Below, in pieces: positions 3,380-10,610 of a DNA stretch of 64,000 nucleotides. The translations under genes and the position numbers were made by a program. The stretch is from contig CAJFCJ010000019.1 in the NCBI GenBank assembly GCA_904063045.1, positions 248,001 through 312,000 of the forward strand, given 5' to 3'. This DNA comes from Dimorphilus gyrociliatus. Lineage: Eukaryota; Animalia; Annelida. Under the pieces are notes generated by a model. The model ran no database searches and was not told the DNA's origin. It saw only the letters and a program-made list of their open reading frames with translations. Each line of letters begins with the position of its first letter. Positions within the stretch are counted from its first letter, which is position 1.

Positions 3380-4021
3380 ATGGCTGATGATAAAAGAATC
3401 GTTGTTATCGGAGTTGATGGAAGTGTTCGTTCAGAGCACGCTTTTGATTGTTGGTATTATTACAAACATCTGAACATTTATAAGTAATTATATGTATATA
3501 TCACATTGATTGTCAATAAATTGCACATCTAGGGTATGCTGAACATTTGCACAAAAAAAAGAACTACGTAATTGTCATCCATTCCGTTGAAGTGCATAAT
3601 GTCCATCCTTATCGTAAGTACATAAAGCATTATTACATTAATGATAAGTAATTGACATATTTACAGTTATTAAACCGTAATTTTTATACTTTTCTTATTA
3701 TTTCTAATAGCGTCAGTTTTTGTTTCGCCGGAAGTTATGCAAGCTGAATTCGAAAAGGAAAAGTCCAAGTCAAAGAAGCTGGAAGAGTACTACACCGAGA
3801 GACTTAAGCAAAGGAACATTGAAGGTGAATTTGTAATAAAAAATGGTAAACCTGGAGAAGCGATTGTAGCATTAGCTAATGATATGAAAACCGAAATGAT
3901 CGTTGTTGGAACAAGAGGTCACGGAAAACTAAGGAGAACAATACTTGGTTCAGTAAGTGATTATATCGTTCATCATGCTCATTGCGCAGTTATAACTGTC
4001 AGACCGGATGTTCCTCTTTAA
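3380..4021 (+). CDS. Universal stress protein (UspA family), 3 exons
   Basis: Exons 3380-3449, 3533-3613, 3711-4021 join in frame. N-terminal VVIGVDGS and C-terminal IVVGTRGHGKLRRTILGSVSDYIVHHAHCAV are USP signatures. Confidence 0.93.
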
Positions 4022-4315: not shown

Positions 4316-5942
4316 TTAAAACGCTACAGAAGTGTATTGCGGAGGTGGCGTTGATGGTAGAACCTCTATAGTGTCATATTGTTCAGGTTTTCCTTTCTCG
4401 TCACTTGGATGGATGTAGTAGGGCGGTGGACTGATCCCTTCTTTTATTTGTTTATTACCAGCGTCTTGATGATTGTCTGATTGTCTTACTGTTGCTCTTT
4501 TCTTCATCTGTAGGAGAATATATTATTACTAGGTCACTTATGAATACTATAAAAGATACTTACGTAGTGGCAAGTAAATACTGATATCACAACAGCCACC
4601 AAAATTAAAATTGTAACTGTGATAGCAATGGCAATAATATGATTTCGTTGTAATTTTTTTGTACATTGGCAAGTATTACAGCCGTTTACTTGTTCATACC
4701 CATCTTCGCAGAACGTAGCACACATGAGTTTTGGGCAAAAAATCAAGCATGTTCTTGTTGCTGCATCGCAAACTTGGTTTTCAAGACAATCGAAGTCCTT
4801 GCTGCAAGTTTCTGATTTCACACAACGGGGGTTTTTGTAGCATGGAGCAGTTACACATTGGATATCATCTTCGATACAAGTTTCTCCGGGACCACATCTT
4901 TTGTCCAAGCAAGACTCTGATTTTCTACATTTGCATATAGGACATCCGTTTAATTGTTCAAATCCATCTTCGCAGAACATTTCACACATGTATTTTGCAC
5001 AGCCGCACGTTTTCGTTTCTTCATCGCAAACTTGATTTGTAGGACAATCAGATTTTTTGCTGCAAGTTTCTGATTTTTTACATTGTGGATTTCTATTACA
5101 AGGGGCGGTTTCACATTGAATGTTATCTTCAACACAAATTTCACCTGGACCACATCTTTTTTCCGAACAAGACATTGATTCTCTACATTTGCATATGTTG
5201 CATCCGTTTAATTGTTCAAATCCATTTTCACAGAACATAGTACACATCACGTCTGGGCAGCCACACATTTTCGTTGTTACATCGCAAACTTGGTTTGTAG
5301 GGCAATCTGAGTTCTTGTTACATGTTGACGGTGGCGGTGGGTTACATGTGCAAGTAGGACATCCATTTTTATCCGTAACCTTGCCATATTCACAAAAGAT
5401 TTGGCATACAGGTGGACAAACTGTAAAAATATTATATAATCTGTATAATAATCCACAAATGAAGTATACCGTTTAAACTACTAACCACACTTGGCTGGTA
5501 TGCTATTTTTGAGGCTACCTTCAATACAGGTTTGACCATCGGGGCATTTCACATCTTTACAATCGAAGACGGGATGCTCTGGTTCGACACATGTATAACC
5601 ATATCGGCAAATCACTTGGAAAGGATTCGGATATTTATTCACGACACAGACGCTTTTGTGACCAGAACATGGATTTCTATCACAGGGATTGTCGCAACAA
5701 GACGAACAATCTGGACAACCATCCGATTTCAGATTGAGAACTCCGTACTTACAGTTTTCACAATGGTCACTGCAATCTTTACACCGGCAATCACAAATTC
5801 CTGGAGTTTCAGCATCTGGATGGATACCATATAAACAATCTTGTACAGTACATTCTTCACACCGTTCACCAGTCGGGTCCGAATGTACTTGAGACAATAG
5901 AACTATAGTTGATAACAGTAGAAGCAATTTAGAAATTTTCAT
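4316..5942 (-). CDS. Type I membrane protein with antistasin-repeat ectodomain, paralog B
   Basis: Exons 5942-5486, 5420-4564, 4507-4316 in frame. Signal peptide, four antistasin motifs, TM segment IIAIAITVTILILVAVVISVF, cytoplasmic tail with PPPY and PPQY. Confidence 0.88.
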
Positions 5943-6777: not shown

Positions 6778-7909
6778 CTAGCAAGAAAGTTCTGGTAGCC
6801 CTTTCTTCTTTTCGTCCTCTTCAGAAATTGTTCTAAGAGAGGTTGTAGAAGTATATCTAGGTGGTGGAGTTGCTGGTGGAACACTAACAAAATCAGTTGG
6901 TTCAACCTTTTTCTCTTCATCATTTGGGTAGATGTAATAGGGTGGTGGACATTCCTTTTGGTCTCCAATTGGTTTTTCATTCATAACTCTTTGTTGATTG
7001 GAGACTTGTCTGGCTCTAGCCTTTTTCTTAATCTATACGGAATGATATATGATAATTTGATCTTTGAGTTGTTGTGTTCTACAATCTTGCTAATACTTAC
7101 GCAGTAGCAAGTAATTCCGGTTACACCAACAATCACCAATATTAAGATTACAGCGGAAAGTATTATGGCTCCACGTTTGTGGTGCTTAAAAAATCCGAAA
7201 CAACTGTCGTCATCGTCATCGGTTTGTTCCTCGGGTATAAGAGATTTGGCTGTTAAGATCAAACAATGTATTTGAATTAGCACTGTACATATGTCTACTT
7301 ACCAACGCAGTATGGTTTTTCAACATCTCCATCTTTAAAAATATGACAAGCATGATGTTTTGCGCACTTCACCCTGTGGCAGAGGTGTTTTTCTGCACAT
7401 TTACACATGGGGCAGCCAGAGGGGTTAAAGAGCATACCATATCTACATTTCACGTATTCTCTATTCGAATCTTTATCAAAATGCCTCATTTCCGTTTCCT
7501 TTTTATGCTTATGGGAATCTCTATCTTTTTCATCATCCTGTTCACGTCCTTTCTTGTGGCGATCATGTTCACGCTCTCTTTCATGTTCACGCTCTCTTTC
7601 ATGTTCAGGATGATTCTCAGGTCTGGGCATATGTCCACTACCTTGCTCACTGTGTTTCATAAACCATTTTGAGCCGTGTCTAAAAGAACCATGTCTGCTG
7701 TCGTTATCATCATCGTCATCATCATCGTCATCATGGTCGTCATCCCGGTCATCATCTCTTTCGTGTCTCTCAATTACACGTTCACATCTTGCTGAACAAA
7801 CCGGTAGCTTGCTCGTATCCATCGACGGAGGCAGACCGGGCCTCTTCAAATGCTTTGCCTCAATGGCAACTGCAATCAGTGCCAGTAAAACGAGTAGGGC
7901 GACTTTCAT
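6778..7909 (-). CDS. Type I membrane protein with His/Asp/Glu-rich insert in an antistasin-like domain, paralog C
   Basis: Exons 7909-7303, 7249-7101, 7032-6778 in frame. Signal peptide MKVALLVLLALIAVAIEA, CRYGMLFNPSGCPMCKC, TM AIILSAVILILVIVGVTGI, tail with PPPY and PPRY. Confidence 0.85.
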
Positions 7910-8285
7910 CGTGAGCTTTTAAAAGATTAGTAAATTAAACGATGATAAACTGAATTTTTCCCTACACTGCTGTACCTGTATTTGCAGCACAGAGTCTGAT
8001 CGATTACCGATGCGCTTCTGAAAAACACAATAATTTATTAGCGAAATGCCTGGCGCTGTGGTCGTGATCTCTTTTAAATAATTATTCAAAAACTTCAAGA
8101 TCTTATATTCATATTCATATTTTAGTCTAATAACACAATAAAACAGTCTATATCGATATTATAATATATGCATCTAGGTCTATTTGACAGACAAAAGTTT
8201 CAAAACTGTCAATGCCAACATAAATTAAAGGTAACCATAATACCTAAAAACACTACAGTAGAGAGCTTTCTAAACCTTTGTGCAT

Positions 8286-8387
8286 GTATGATTCAGCGGC
8301 AAGTGATTGCATAGGGTAAAAAACTACGGTGAGGGCTTAGAAAGGTATGAGTCAGAGGCAAGTGATTGCAGGGGGTGAAAAACTCGG
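8286..8387. repeat. Imperfect ~44-bp direct repeat (two copies, 59-nt period)
   Basis: gtatgattcagcggcaagtgattgcatagggtaaaaaactacgg (8286-8329) versus gtatgagtcagaggcaagtgattgcagggggtgaaaaactcgg (8345-8387). Confidence 0.8.
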
Positions 8388-8912
8388 GCGTTATAAATTA
8401 TCATTTATTTTTAATTTAATACTTTTCAAAACAGACTTCATTGTGATAATAAATTTTTAGAAATCTTGATAGTATTTGATTAATGAAAAAAATTGTTTAT
8501 CTTCATTTATATATGTTTGTCATGTTTTTATATGTTTCATATTTTCTATTATTATAAAATAATTGACTAAAAATACTAAAAAAGCATTCAGAATGACATT
8601 AATATTTTATAAATGCTCCATCAAATGAATTAATGCAAAATTATGCAATTTTAAGAAATAGAGAAACACACAATTTAAAAAAAAAGCGGTAGGTGACAAT
8701 AAAGAATAGAACCAGTTGCCGCACTTTAAGTTCAGTGACTTATTAGCATTTTATTCATAAAAAAGCTTATTTTCAAAAAAACATTGATCAGTAACTGTGG
8801 AGTAATAAAAGCTTTAATAATATCCACGAGCATGTTCAATTTATAGTTGTGTGCAATTTATAAGTTGATTCTATTTTTCATTTGTTTTTTGTTTTTGTAT
8901 ATTTTCATTAGT

Positions 8913-10610
8913 TTAGAATTCTGATGTATCGATTTTCCATAATTCCTATCAGGAAGAGAATATTGTATTTTATATTATATGTATGGTTGAAAAGCAACTA
9001 TTATTAAGTATATTCATTATTTTAACATATTACTAAAAATCGAGATCTTTCATAATCCATGTAGACTTCTATTTCCTTTATATCAACTTGGTTAACATTA
9101 AATTTCACCCTGGGTAAGAGATTATCATGAATGACGTCATTGCTTTCTTTAATAAATTCATAGCCATCTAATTCTTCTAGACATGTTTTGAAATGTTCAT
9201 AAGCTTCACAACAAACGGCCAAATTGTTCAAAGTAAAATTAATTCTTTTTGAATAGATAAAAAAAGAATATCAATTAGGCAATAAAAAGGAAATTTAATA
9301 TTTATAATCATAAATTAACCTATATATTATTGTACCTTTTTTCTATTGCAATATATAAAATCTTATTCCAGCGTCCAATTGTCAAAAGTTGAAAGACGGT
9401 TCGAAAGAAAGCATTAGTTAGATCTTCATTGTAAACAACTACAATTAAAGAAAAGATATGATAAATATATTATTATATTACGCATTTGCAAATATATAGG
9501 CTTACAAGTTATATTTCAATAAATAATGAAATAAACAGTATTAAATGTAGTATGTGTACAAATAAAAATAGGTCTTTTCTTTATAAGATAAATATAAATG
9601 ATAAAAATTTCATAAGGAAAGTAAAAACAGCTTTCATTAAATGATATTCAACGTACCGTCAGCAGCAATAATATATTTTGCTTCCTCAGCTATTCTACGT
9701 TCTTCTGTATCCCATTTTAATAATTCTAACAATGTTTCTAAATATTAAGCTTTAATTAAATATTAACTTTTTAAATATAATGCTAAAATAACAGATATTA
9801 ATACCTTCCCAATTAATTTCTTTTGTTAAAACAGTGCTTCCTTCTTTAAGAAATTTCTTATTATTTTCAATATTCTTTTCGCATAATTTCAAAATATTTT
9901 CCCCCTTATCTAATGTTGTTTTTAGTAAACGATATTGTGTTATTTTAAGTGTTTTAAATAAATTTATATATCGTCAATATTAAACCTGTACAGATGACTG
10001 TTTTTGCAAAAATTCCTCCAATAATTCCAGCTAAACCAACTCCTGAACCTAATTCGATGATATCCTCATTTTTTAATTTTTGCCTTTGATCTATTAGTAA
10101 TTCGCAGAGTAGTAAACTACTATGCCATACTTGTAAACCAACATCTTTTATTAGGGTACACTGTGCATGGGCTATAAATAATAATATAATAATAATTTTC
10201 TTTGTCTTTTAATTGTCAAGTAAATTCTTTAATAGAAATTTTAAATCAGATGGCCTAGAAATATAAGTCTATTTATTTTGAATGACGCGATATTTACTTA
10301 TACTTATACTGATTTCATTGCCGCGTTTAAGTTTTCTTTCTCTTTTAAGAATAAAATCTCCATCGCTATCTCTTTTAACACCATCTACAGATTGGTCTTT
10401 ATTAGACAACGATATTTGCAATTCCGGTATTACAAATTCAAACGTGGTTTCGAACGCTATTCAAGGAAAATTTTTGATTTAATAAAAAAGACAAATAGAT
10501 TATGCTTCTTTTTTTATTAAACCTTCATAATCTTTTAAATTTTGTTCCTGTTTTTTCGCAATATTAAGAATATGAACGTTCGAGAGAGCCTCTTGCAACT
10601 CCCGCTCCAT
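8913..10610 (-). CDS. METTL22: Methyltransferase-like protein 22, multi-exon
   Basis: Spliced motifs ALSNVHIL, RDSDGDF, DVGLQVWHSSLLL, IELGSGVGLAG, IAIEKRINFTL, CEAYEHFKTCL, ELWKI match METTL22. Largely missed by the ORF track because exons are short. Confidence 0.88.

Follow-up and report, generated by a model that had tools for sequence, protein, structure and literature searches.

A candidate split antistasin-like unit and its long low-complexity spacer in a predicted annelid membrane protein

What becomes of an antistasin-like unit when the two cysteines that should flank its reactive site stand 112 residues apart is the question raised by paralogue C, a compact three-exon gene which ORF reading and tblastn with an orthologue (P0001) place on the minus strand at 6778-7909 of the window, by which we mean the whole 64,000-nucleotide stretch of Dimorphilus gyrociliatus DNA that was analysed. 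The initial annotation of this locus proposed that the inhibitory loop of the unit had given way to a large disordered loop stapled by the disulfide scaffold, possibly for metal or mineral binding or as protease bait. Judging this proposal depends on whether the spacer reaches the protein, whether the two cysteines upstream of it belong to the unit at all, and what a loop of this kind could still do.

Paralogue C within a local antistasin cluster

Exon 1 of paralogue C is one uninterrupted frame, lying in an ORF of 204 aa (7295-7909, minus strand), and ends in phase 1 at the donor G/GTAAGT. Nineteen residues separate the signal-peptide-like start MKVALLVLLALIAVAIEA from PV-C38-SAR-C42-ERV, and beyond the spacer lie the core cysteines C155 (its codon starts at 7447), C166, C169 and C171, followed by a four-cysteine module whose frame recurs in the module between units of paralogues A and B and in the N-subdomain of antistasin (Table 1). 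A transmembrane helix and then PPxY motifs, the arrangement of CYYR1-like adaptors, can be read from the sequence of the two remaining exons; the three exons were aligned and searched as separate rows, not as a joined protein. PPPYY and PPPRY are conserved in paralogue C, P0001, P0002 and P0004, with PPPYN (not a PPxY motif) and PPPKY at the same two places in P0003. The ectodomain also holds an eleventh, juxtamembrane cysteine (7200-7202, exon 2; aa 208 of P0001; also in P0005) in the motif C-[FW]-x-F-F-K-H-H-K, which is kept in three species; the resulting odd number of cysteines may reflect a free thiol, or else a disulfide between molecules and so a dimer.

Table 1. Positions of paralogue C features in the window
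Feature	Position	Strand	Basis
Exon 1: signal peptide, CxxxC motif, low-complexity spacer, antistasin-like C3-C6 core, 4-Cys module	7303..7909	-	ORF; tblastn, P0001 aa 1-193 to 7909-7298
Signal peptide MKVALLVLLALIAVAIEA (aa 1-18)	7856..7909	-	Assigned by inspection of sequence; 15/18 residues identical in P0001
C38-SAR-C42, candidate Cys-1 and Cys-2 of a split antistasin-like unit	7784..7798	-	Within the conserved motif PVC[ST]A[RK]CERV
Cys-free Asp/Glu/Arg/His-rich low-complexity spacer, 112 codons (aa 43-154)	7448..7783	-	Counted by script
GAT/GAC triplet run, poly-Asp tract	7701..7756	-	Tandem Repeats Finder
Perfect 18-nt tandem repeat, 2.5 copies, encoding EHEREREHEREREH (EHERER)	7563..7607	-	Tandem Repeats Finder, 100% matches, score 90
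Antistasin-like core Cys-3 to Cys-6, C-RYGMLFNPSG-C-PM-C-K-C (aa 155-171)	7397..7447	-	Sub-threshold PF02822 match; similarity to intact units
4-Cys module C-x4-C-x5-C-x12-C (aa 172-202; C177, C182, C188, C201)	7304..7396	-	10-row alignment; 1SKZ alignment
Exon 2: acidic juxtamembrane EEQTDDDDD, conserved eleventh Cys (CFGFFKHHK), transmembrane helix	7101..7249	-	tblastn, 59% identity to P0001 aa 192-242; orthologous exon P0005
Exon 3: cytoplasmic tail with PPPYY and PPPRY (PPxY), stop codon	6778..7032	-	tblastn, 73% identity to P0001; tail orthologues P0002, P0003

The window contains 12 intact antistasin units, all carried in tandem by paralogues A (1-2668, read from 2668 downward) and B (read from 5942 to 4307), which lie on the minus strand and are larger than C. 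The first exons of A and B are nearly identical, pointing to a recent local duplication. Paralogue B corresponds to P0004, a protein of 501 aa with four PF02822 units (44.3 bits) that align to antistasin 1SKZ, a transmembrane helix and a PPxY tail. Paralogue C follows this three-exon plan too, with a first exon that likewise ends in phase 1, and also has the helix and the tail. Descent of paralogue C from an antistasin gene is indicated by its place as the tandem neighbour of A and B and by the best matches of its core, which are intact units at 1633-1743 (E 5e-4) and 5278-5394 (E 0.002). Pfam itself recognises the core poorly, with PF02822 scoring 15.8 bits against a gathering threshold of 21.2 and covering aa 154-171 at profile positions 9-26 of 26; a fragment from a third species scores 13.5 bits at positions 8-26, also below threshold, and P0001 gives no match. 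Paralogue C is, on this reading of its exons, a predicted single-pass type I membrane protein in a local tandem family of membrane-tethered antistasin-domain proteins.

Several further features of the neighbourhood were observed. The first exons of A and B (2387-2590 and 5664-5870, minus strand) hold two odd Cys-rich units, C-EE-C-TVQD-C-LYG... and C-SDH-C-EN-C-KYG...C-PD-C-SS-C, which follow the antistasin frame and go unrecognised by Pfam. A small universal-stress-protein gene (Usp, PF00582) sits on the plus strand at 3737-4021 between the antistasin-family paralogues, and the region upstream of paralogue C (8001-10000) is very AT-rich, with a GC content of 25.6% against 35-40% elsewhere.

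Between Cys42 and Cys155 a script counts 112 residues, which is exactly the length and position first annotated, and both residue composition and Tandem Repeats Finder bear out the accompanying description of a charged, low-complexity stretch with poly-Asp, EHERER repeats and many His. Asp makes up 20.5% of the spacer, Glu 15.2%, Arg 14.3%, His 12.5% and Lys 8.9%, with a net charge of -14 and about 10% hydrophobic residues. The 18-nt repeat looks like a recent slippage product, and taken with the GAT/GAC repeats it suggests that the spacer has grown by replication slippage. The premise that antistasin has only about three residues, P1 among them, between these two cysteines also holds, since the gap from Cys-2 to Cys-3 is two or three residues in 12/12 intact units of the window and three in 1SKZ, where the equivalent stretch, aligned to the units of paralogue B, is C33-R34-V35-H36-C37. 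Set beside these values, 112 residues is an extreme outlier, and with such a gap between Cys-2 and Cys-3 paralogue C lacks the contiguous six-cysteine frame C-x3/4-C-x2/3-C-x9-12-C-x2-C-x-C.

Relatives of paralogue C and turnover of the spacer

The closest relative, P0001 (322 aa), was found by a word-index protein search with 44% identity over exon 1 and is encoded on a 1044-nt Logan contig as an uninterrupted coding sequence without introns. When P0001 is aligned to the window by tblastn it splits into exactly the three exons of paralogue C, in the same order, and given that its coding sequence is intron-free and colinear with all three, the contig reads as a spliced transcript. It nonetheless keeps PVCTAKCERV, a 102-residue stretch rich in poly-Asp, Arg and His, and the RCKHGMLFDMTGCPMCIC core, and it has GAC/GAT runs at the place equivalent to the poly-Asp tract. 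From this contig we conclude that the spacer is real and translated, and expressed in a relative. Conservation is unevenly spread along the alignment, with 7/9 identities in PVCxAxCERV, 11/17 in the core and 22/31 in the 4-Cys module; the spacer and its 102-aa counterpart are identical at 38/99 aligned residues, with 16 gap columns. Few stretches of the ectodomain are, as judged from these alignments, as well conserved as PVC[ST]A[RK]CERV.

A profile search of 1.84 billion representatives returned four proteins only, namely paralogue B, P0002, P0005 and P0003, and no further ectodomain relative appeared in that exhaustive search. P0001 was also the sole protein recovered when exon 1, P0001 itself or the N-terminal 46 residues served as word-index queries, a metagenome scan for relatives gave no match, and the protein atlas gave only leads below 0.9. 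Within the reach of these searches, the gene family appears lineage-restricted and confined to a few small marine annelids. The 951-nt contig that encodes P0003 (L004) comes from run ERR14224705, to which a metagenome paper on the coral microbiome refers (PMC13083261). Relatives of this worm family are thus to be met with in reef samples.

P0002 and P0005 are exon-sized fragments on one 9.7-kb genomic contig (L002/L003) of a third species, and P0003 is a tail fragment. The gene order of L002/L003 is syntenic with that of the window, a C-like gene being followed by a Usp gene on the other strand (1279-1563 of L002) and then by an A/B-like gene, of which there is only one after Usp. The contig starts inside exon 1 of the C orthologue, where at least 52 Cys-free residues precede K-C-QKGMIFDKMGCPVCKC. 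These 52 residues are rich in Gly, Ser, Tyr and Pro, with few acidic residues or His, and include NSGSGSGYPH twice, encoded by a 30-nt repeat; a PEGxP anchor in the spacer aligns across all three species. A long Cys-free spacer before Cys-3 is thus ancestral to the three species, whilst its chemistry drifts. That the length class has been kept and the composition has not fits a disordered spacer subject to turnover by slippage, and argues against a conserved role in binding metal or mineral.

The N-terminal cysteine pair

Closure of the spacer into a loop would depend on C38 and C42 being the unit's Cys-1 and Cys-2. The C-x3-C spacing of C-SAR-C is that of the intact units C-PPV-C-(A/Q)IF-C-E(H/Y)G (5344-5418 and 1693-1767), which are also the best matches of the core, and simple arithmetic gives a chance of ~0.03 that two cysteines, placed among the 136 mature residues that precede the core, would fall three or four residues apart. 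With both included, cysteines 38, 42, 155, 166, 169 and 171, together with 177, 182, 188 and 201, fit the antistasin 6+4 scheme. The structure paper for 1SKZ reportedly gives the disulfides as Cys1-Cys4, Cys2-Cys5 and Cys3-Cys6; without C38 and C42, Cys-4 and Cys-5 would then have no canonical partners, which favours membership of the pair.

The alternative that survives best, which we regard as possible but on the unlikely side, is that the unit is truncated and the spacer an ordinary, linear disordered linker. Here the unit's own Cys-1 and Cys-2 would have been lost by point mutation, and the N-terminal CxxxC would be unrelated to it, being for example the remnant of an earlier unit (as in ER-C-EE-C of paralogue B) paired with itself or with the eleventh cysteine. 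An ungapped alignment of KDCSDHCENCKYG from the exon-1 unit of B with KDSNREYVKCRYG from C can be read in this way, given that a Ser and a Tyr adjoining Cys-3 in C face Cys-1 and Cys-2 of B, and that Cys to Ser and Cys to Tyr are each one-base changes, so that loss of both by point mutation is possible. However, the K-D match lies within a K/D-rich stretch and is not significant (BLAST with the whole segment gives an E of 0.005, driven by the core), and derivation from a B-like ancestor would need six cysteine losses as opposed to none for an in-frame expansion.

An HMM built from the 12 intact units gives ~10 bits with or without the spacer, so its in-silico deletion brings no gain in score and C-SAR-C contributes nothing measurable, as a truncated unit would have it, although a comparison of this kind has no power to discriminate, since local alignment ignores the prefix; the Pfam alignment, restricted to profile positions 9-26, leans the same way. 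AlphaFold gives a pLDDT of 43 for the whole of exon 1, with the core below 50, and of 76 for the C-terminal 52 residues modelled from the 10-row alignment, so that these residues are predicted to fold alone, which again suits a truncated unit. Antistasin was not recovered with the 52-residue model either by Foldseek against the PDB (best E 2.7, to EGF-like Pvs25/Pfs25) or by VIA-align wide (best Z 2.1, to a vWC domain), and a PDB sequence search with exon 1 returned low-complexity noise only. The odd number of ectodomain cysteines might also be taken to favour a linear linker, but with an eleventh conserved cysteine in the ectodomain arguments from parity are weak. A truncated unit would moreover leave Cys-4 and Cys-5 without partners unless they formed a strained C-x2-C bond, and would not account for a CxxxC-ERV motif that is strongly conserved and spaced identically to that of the closest intact units.

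That the N-terminal cysteine pair staples the spacer into a loop is a plausible inference, for which we would put the odds at about even to moderate. The explanation that we favour overall, and consider somewhat more probable than its negation, is a split antistasin-like unit with a translated, disordered spacer and a presumed staple. The sole antistasin-like unit of paralogue C would be divided such that C-x3-C-ERV follows the signal peptide, and Cys-3 to Cys-6 with the 4-Cys module come ~110 residues later. The intervening stretch is intrinsically disordered, low in complexity and translated, is older than the split of at least three species, and turns over fast by replication slippage, so that it is Asp/His/Glu/Arg-rich here and in one relative and Gly/Ser/Tyr/Pro-rich in the third species. 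Cys38 and Cys42 would most likely still partner Cys-4 and Cys-5, so that a small disulfide base near the membrane would close the disordered segment into a large loop. Such a loop would serve as a flexible surface loop or spacer of high charge and not as a specific binding site, and the cytoplasmic PPxY motifs would probably serve in sorting by linking the protein to WW-domain (Nedd4-type) ligases.

Possible functions and relation to known proteins

A canonical reactive loop has P1 directly after Cys-2 and Cys-3 at P3'; in antistasin R34-V35 is the established reactive site for factor Xa, with R34 as P1 between C33 and C37. In paralogue C, Cys42 is followed by E-R-V and Cys-3 is 113 positions away. 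Given that the three-residue P1-P2' loop anchored by Cys-2 and Cys-3 is gone, the unit should be unable to work as a canonical antistasin-type serine-protease inhibitor, and we can say with good confidence that the canonical inhibitory loop no longer exists in paralogue C. The proposal that a large disordered loop has replaced it is upheld insofar as the spacer occupies the C2-C3 reactive-site position of a degenerate antistasin-like unit, is translated, and stands where the canonical loop is missing; the stapling of that loop carries the odds given above.

The composition of the spacer invites comparison with acidic and His-rich low-complexity proteins that bind cations, such as those of the histidine-rich Ca-binding protein type, which have poly-Asp runs and His/Glu/Arg repeats. 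Composition is where the similarity ends, as no homology was found (the PDB matches are low-complexity matches only) and the third species does not share this residue make-up. A dedicated metal- or mineral-binding loop, in which poly-Asp and His-rich repeats were selected for Ca2+, Zn2+ or mineral surfaces, would be served by a content of 36% Asp+Glu and 12.5% His with D runs and HE/HD pairs, by the similar composition of P0001 with its poly-D tract at the same place, and by the second acidic run beside the membrane. We nevertheless judge it unlikely, and the metal-binding role first suggested is weakened, since the spacer of the positional orthologue in the third species is Gly/Ser/Tyr/Pro-rich and its 52 visible residues include few that are acidic or His, the repeats are perfect and therefore recent, identity along the spacer is low, and a membrane tether and sorting tail set the protein apart from secreted matrix proteins.

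A more speculative variant, drawn by analogy and to be given very little weight, is that the antistasin knot might serve as a disulfide clamp displaying a large, fast-evolving disordered loop on the cell surface, and that in this lineage the loop might be a low-affinity sensor of divalent cations or pH, its state being passed on through the PPxY tail to Nedd4-type ligases. Bsd2 and NDFIP are metal-responsive PPxY adaptors that offer an analogy to such a sensor, and no homology to them was found here. Slightly less likely again is a processed connecting peptide or protease bait, in which the spacer would be cleaved out or clipped to leave two disulfide-linked chains. Basic clusters do occur in the spacer (RHKKGR in paralogue C, DKKRED in P0001) and, given a staple, two chains could result from this topology, but the clusters do not align from one species to another, none is seen in the visible part of the third, there are no dibasic sites at the spacer boundaries, and the idea depends on a staple that is itself putative; with no conserved dibasic or other cleavage site, the suggestion of a bait finds no footing. 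Least credible of all is that the spacer is an artefact of genomic reading, an in-frame intron or a stretch otherwise removed from the mRNA, or that the gene is not expressed: the protein of paralogue C is absent from both protein libraries searched, where it may be unannotated, but the P0001 contig, spliced at both real introns, keeps the stretch, full enumeration finds seven in-frame GT..AG pairs around the spacer, all with purine-rich acceptors and none (0/7) restoring the short C-x3-C loop, and the ORF stays intact over 336 nt of low complexity, with indels between species remaining in frame.

Annelids commonly have antistasin-like proteins that are not from leeches and whose function is not known (PMC7851590). 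With the antistasin family (antistasin 1SKZ, hirustasin, bdellastasin; PF02822) paralogue C has in common C-xxG-x7-C-xx-C-x-C, the C-terminal two thirds of the unit, and the frame of the 4-Cys module. It differs in having 112 rather than three residues between Cys-2 and Cys-3 and no P1-P2' loop, in the Glu after Cys-2, in its sub-threshold Pfam score, and in being membrane-anchored rather than secreted. Membrane-anchored antistasin-like domains are already known from CRIM1, a type I transmembrane protein (PMC11922885), which like paralogue C is single-pass, with antistasin-like Cys-rich units in its ectodomain and presumably no protease inhibition (PMC11922885). Paralogue C is much smaller, has no IGFBP or VWC domains detected by Pfam, and has a split unit and a PPxY tail.

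The tail invites a further comparison with small PPxY adaptors, CYYR1 and yeast Rcr1/2, in which a transmembrane helix likewise leads into a short tail bearing two PPxY motifs. CYYR1 and yeast RCR are PPxY membrane proteins linked to Nedd4/Rsp5-type ligases. The similarity of P0001 aa 221-299 (window 6781-7032) to both families falls below their cut-offs, at 19.3 bits against 31 for CYYR1 (PF10873) and 14.7 against 27.8 for RCR. The PPxY motifs, together with this weak, sub-threshold similarity, suggest WW-domain-dependent sorting; the ectodomain of paralogue C is unrelated to those of CYYR1 and Rcr1/2, and any binding to WW domains is a prediction from the motifs.

No antistasin unit with an enlarged reactive loop between Cys-2 and Cys-3 came up in literature searches, nor did any account of the paralogue C family, and we read the spacer-split unit as a lineage-restricted variant of a known domain. 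Irrespective of whether the staple is real, the family is limited to a few small annelids. If the staple is not real, then paralogue C would amount to a lineage-restricted membrane protein with a simple low-complexity linker. If it is real, then nature would here have let a tiny inhibitor knot tolerate a ~35-fold expansion of its reactive-site loop and switch from protease inhibitor to a scaffold displaying a disordered loop, a case of some interest for how Cys-rich domains evolve and for the engineering of knottin-like scaffolds by loop grafting.
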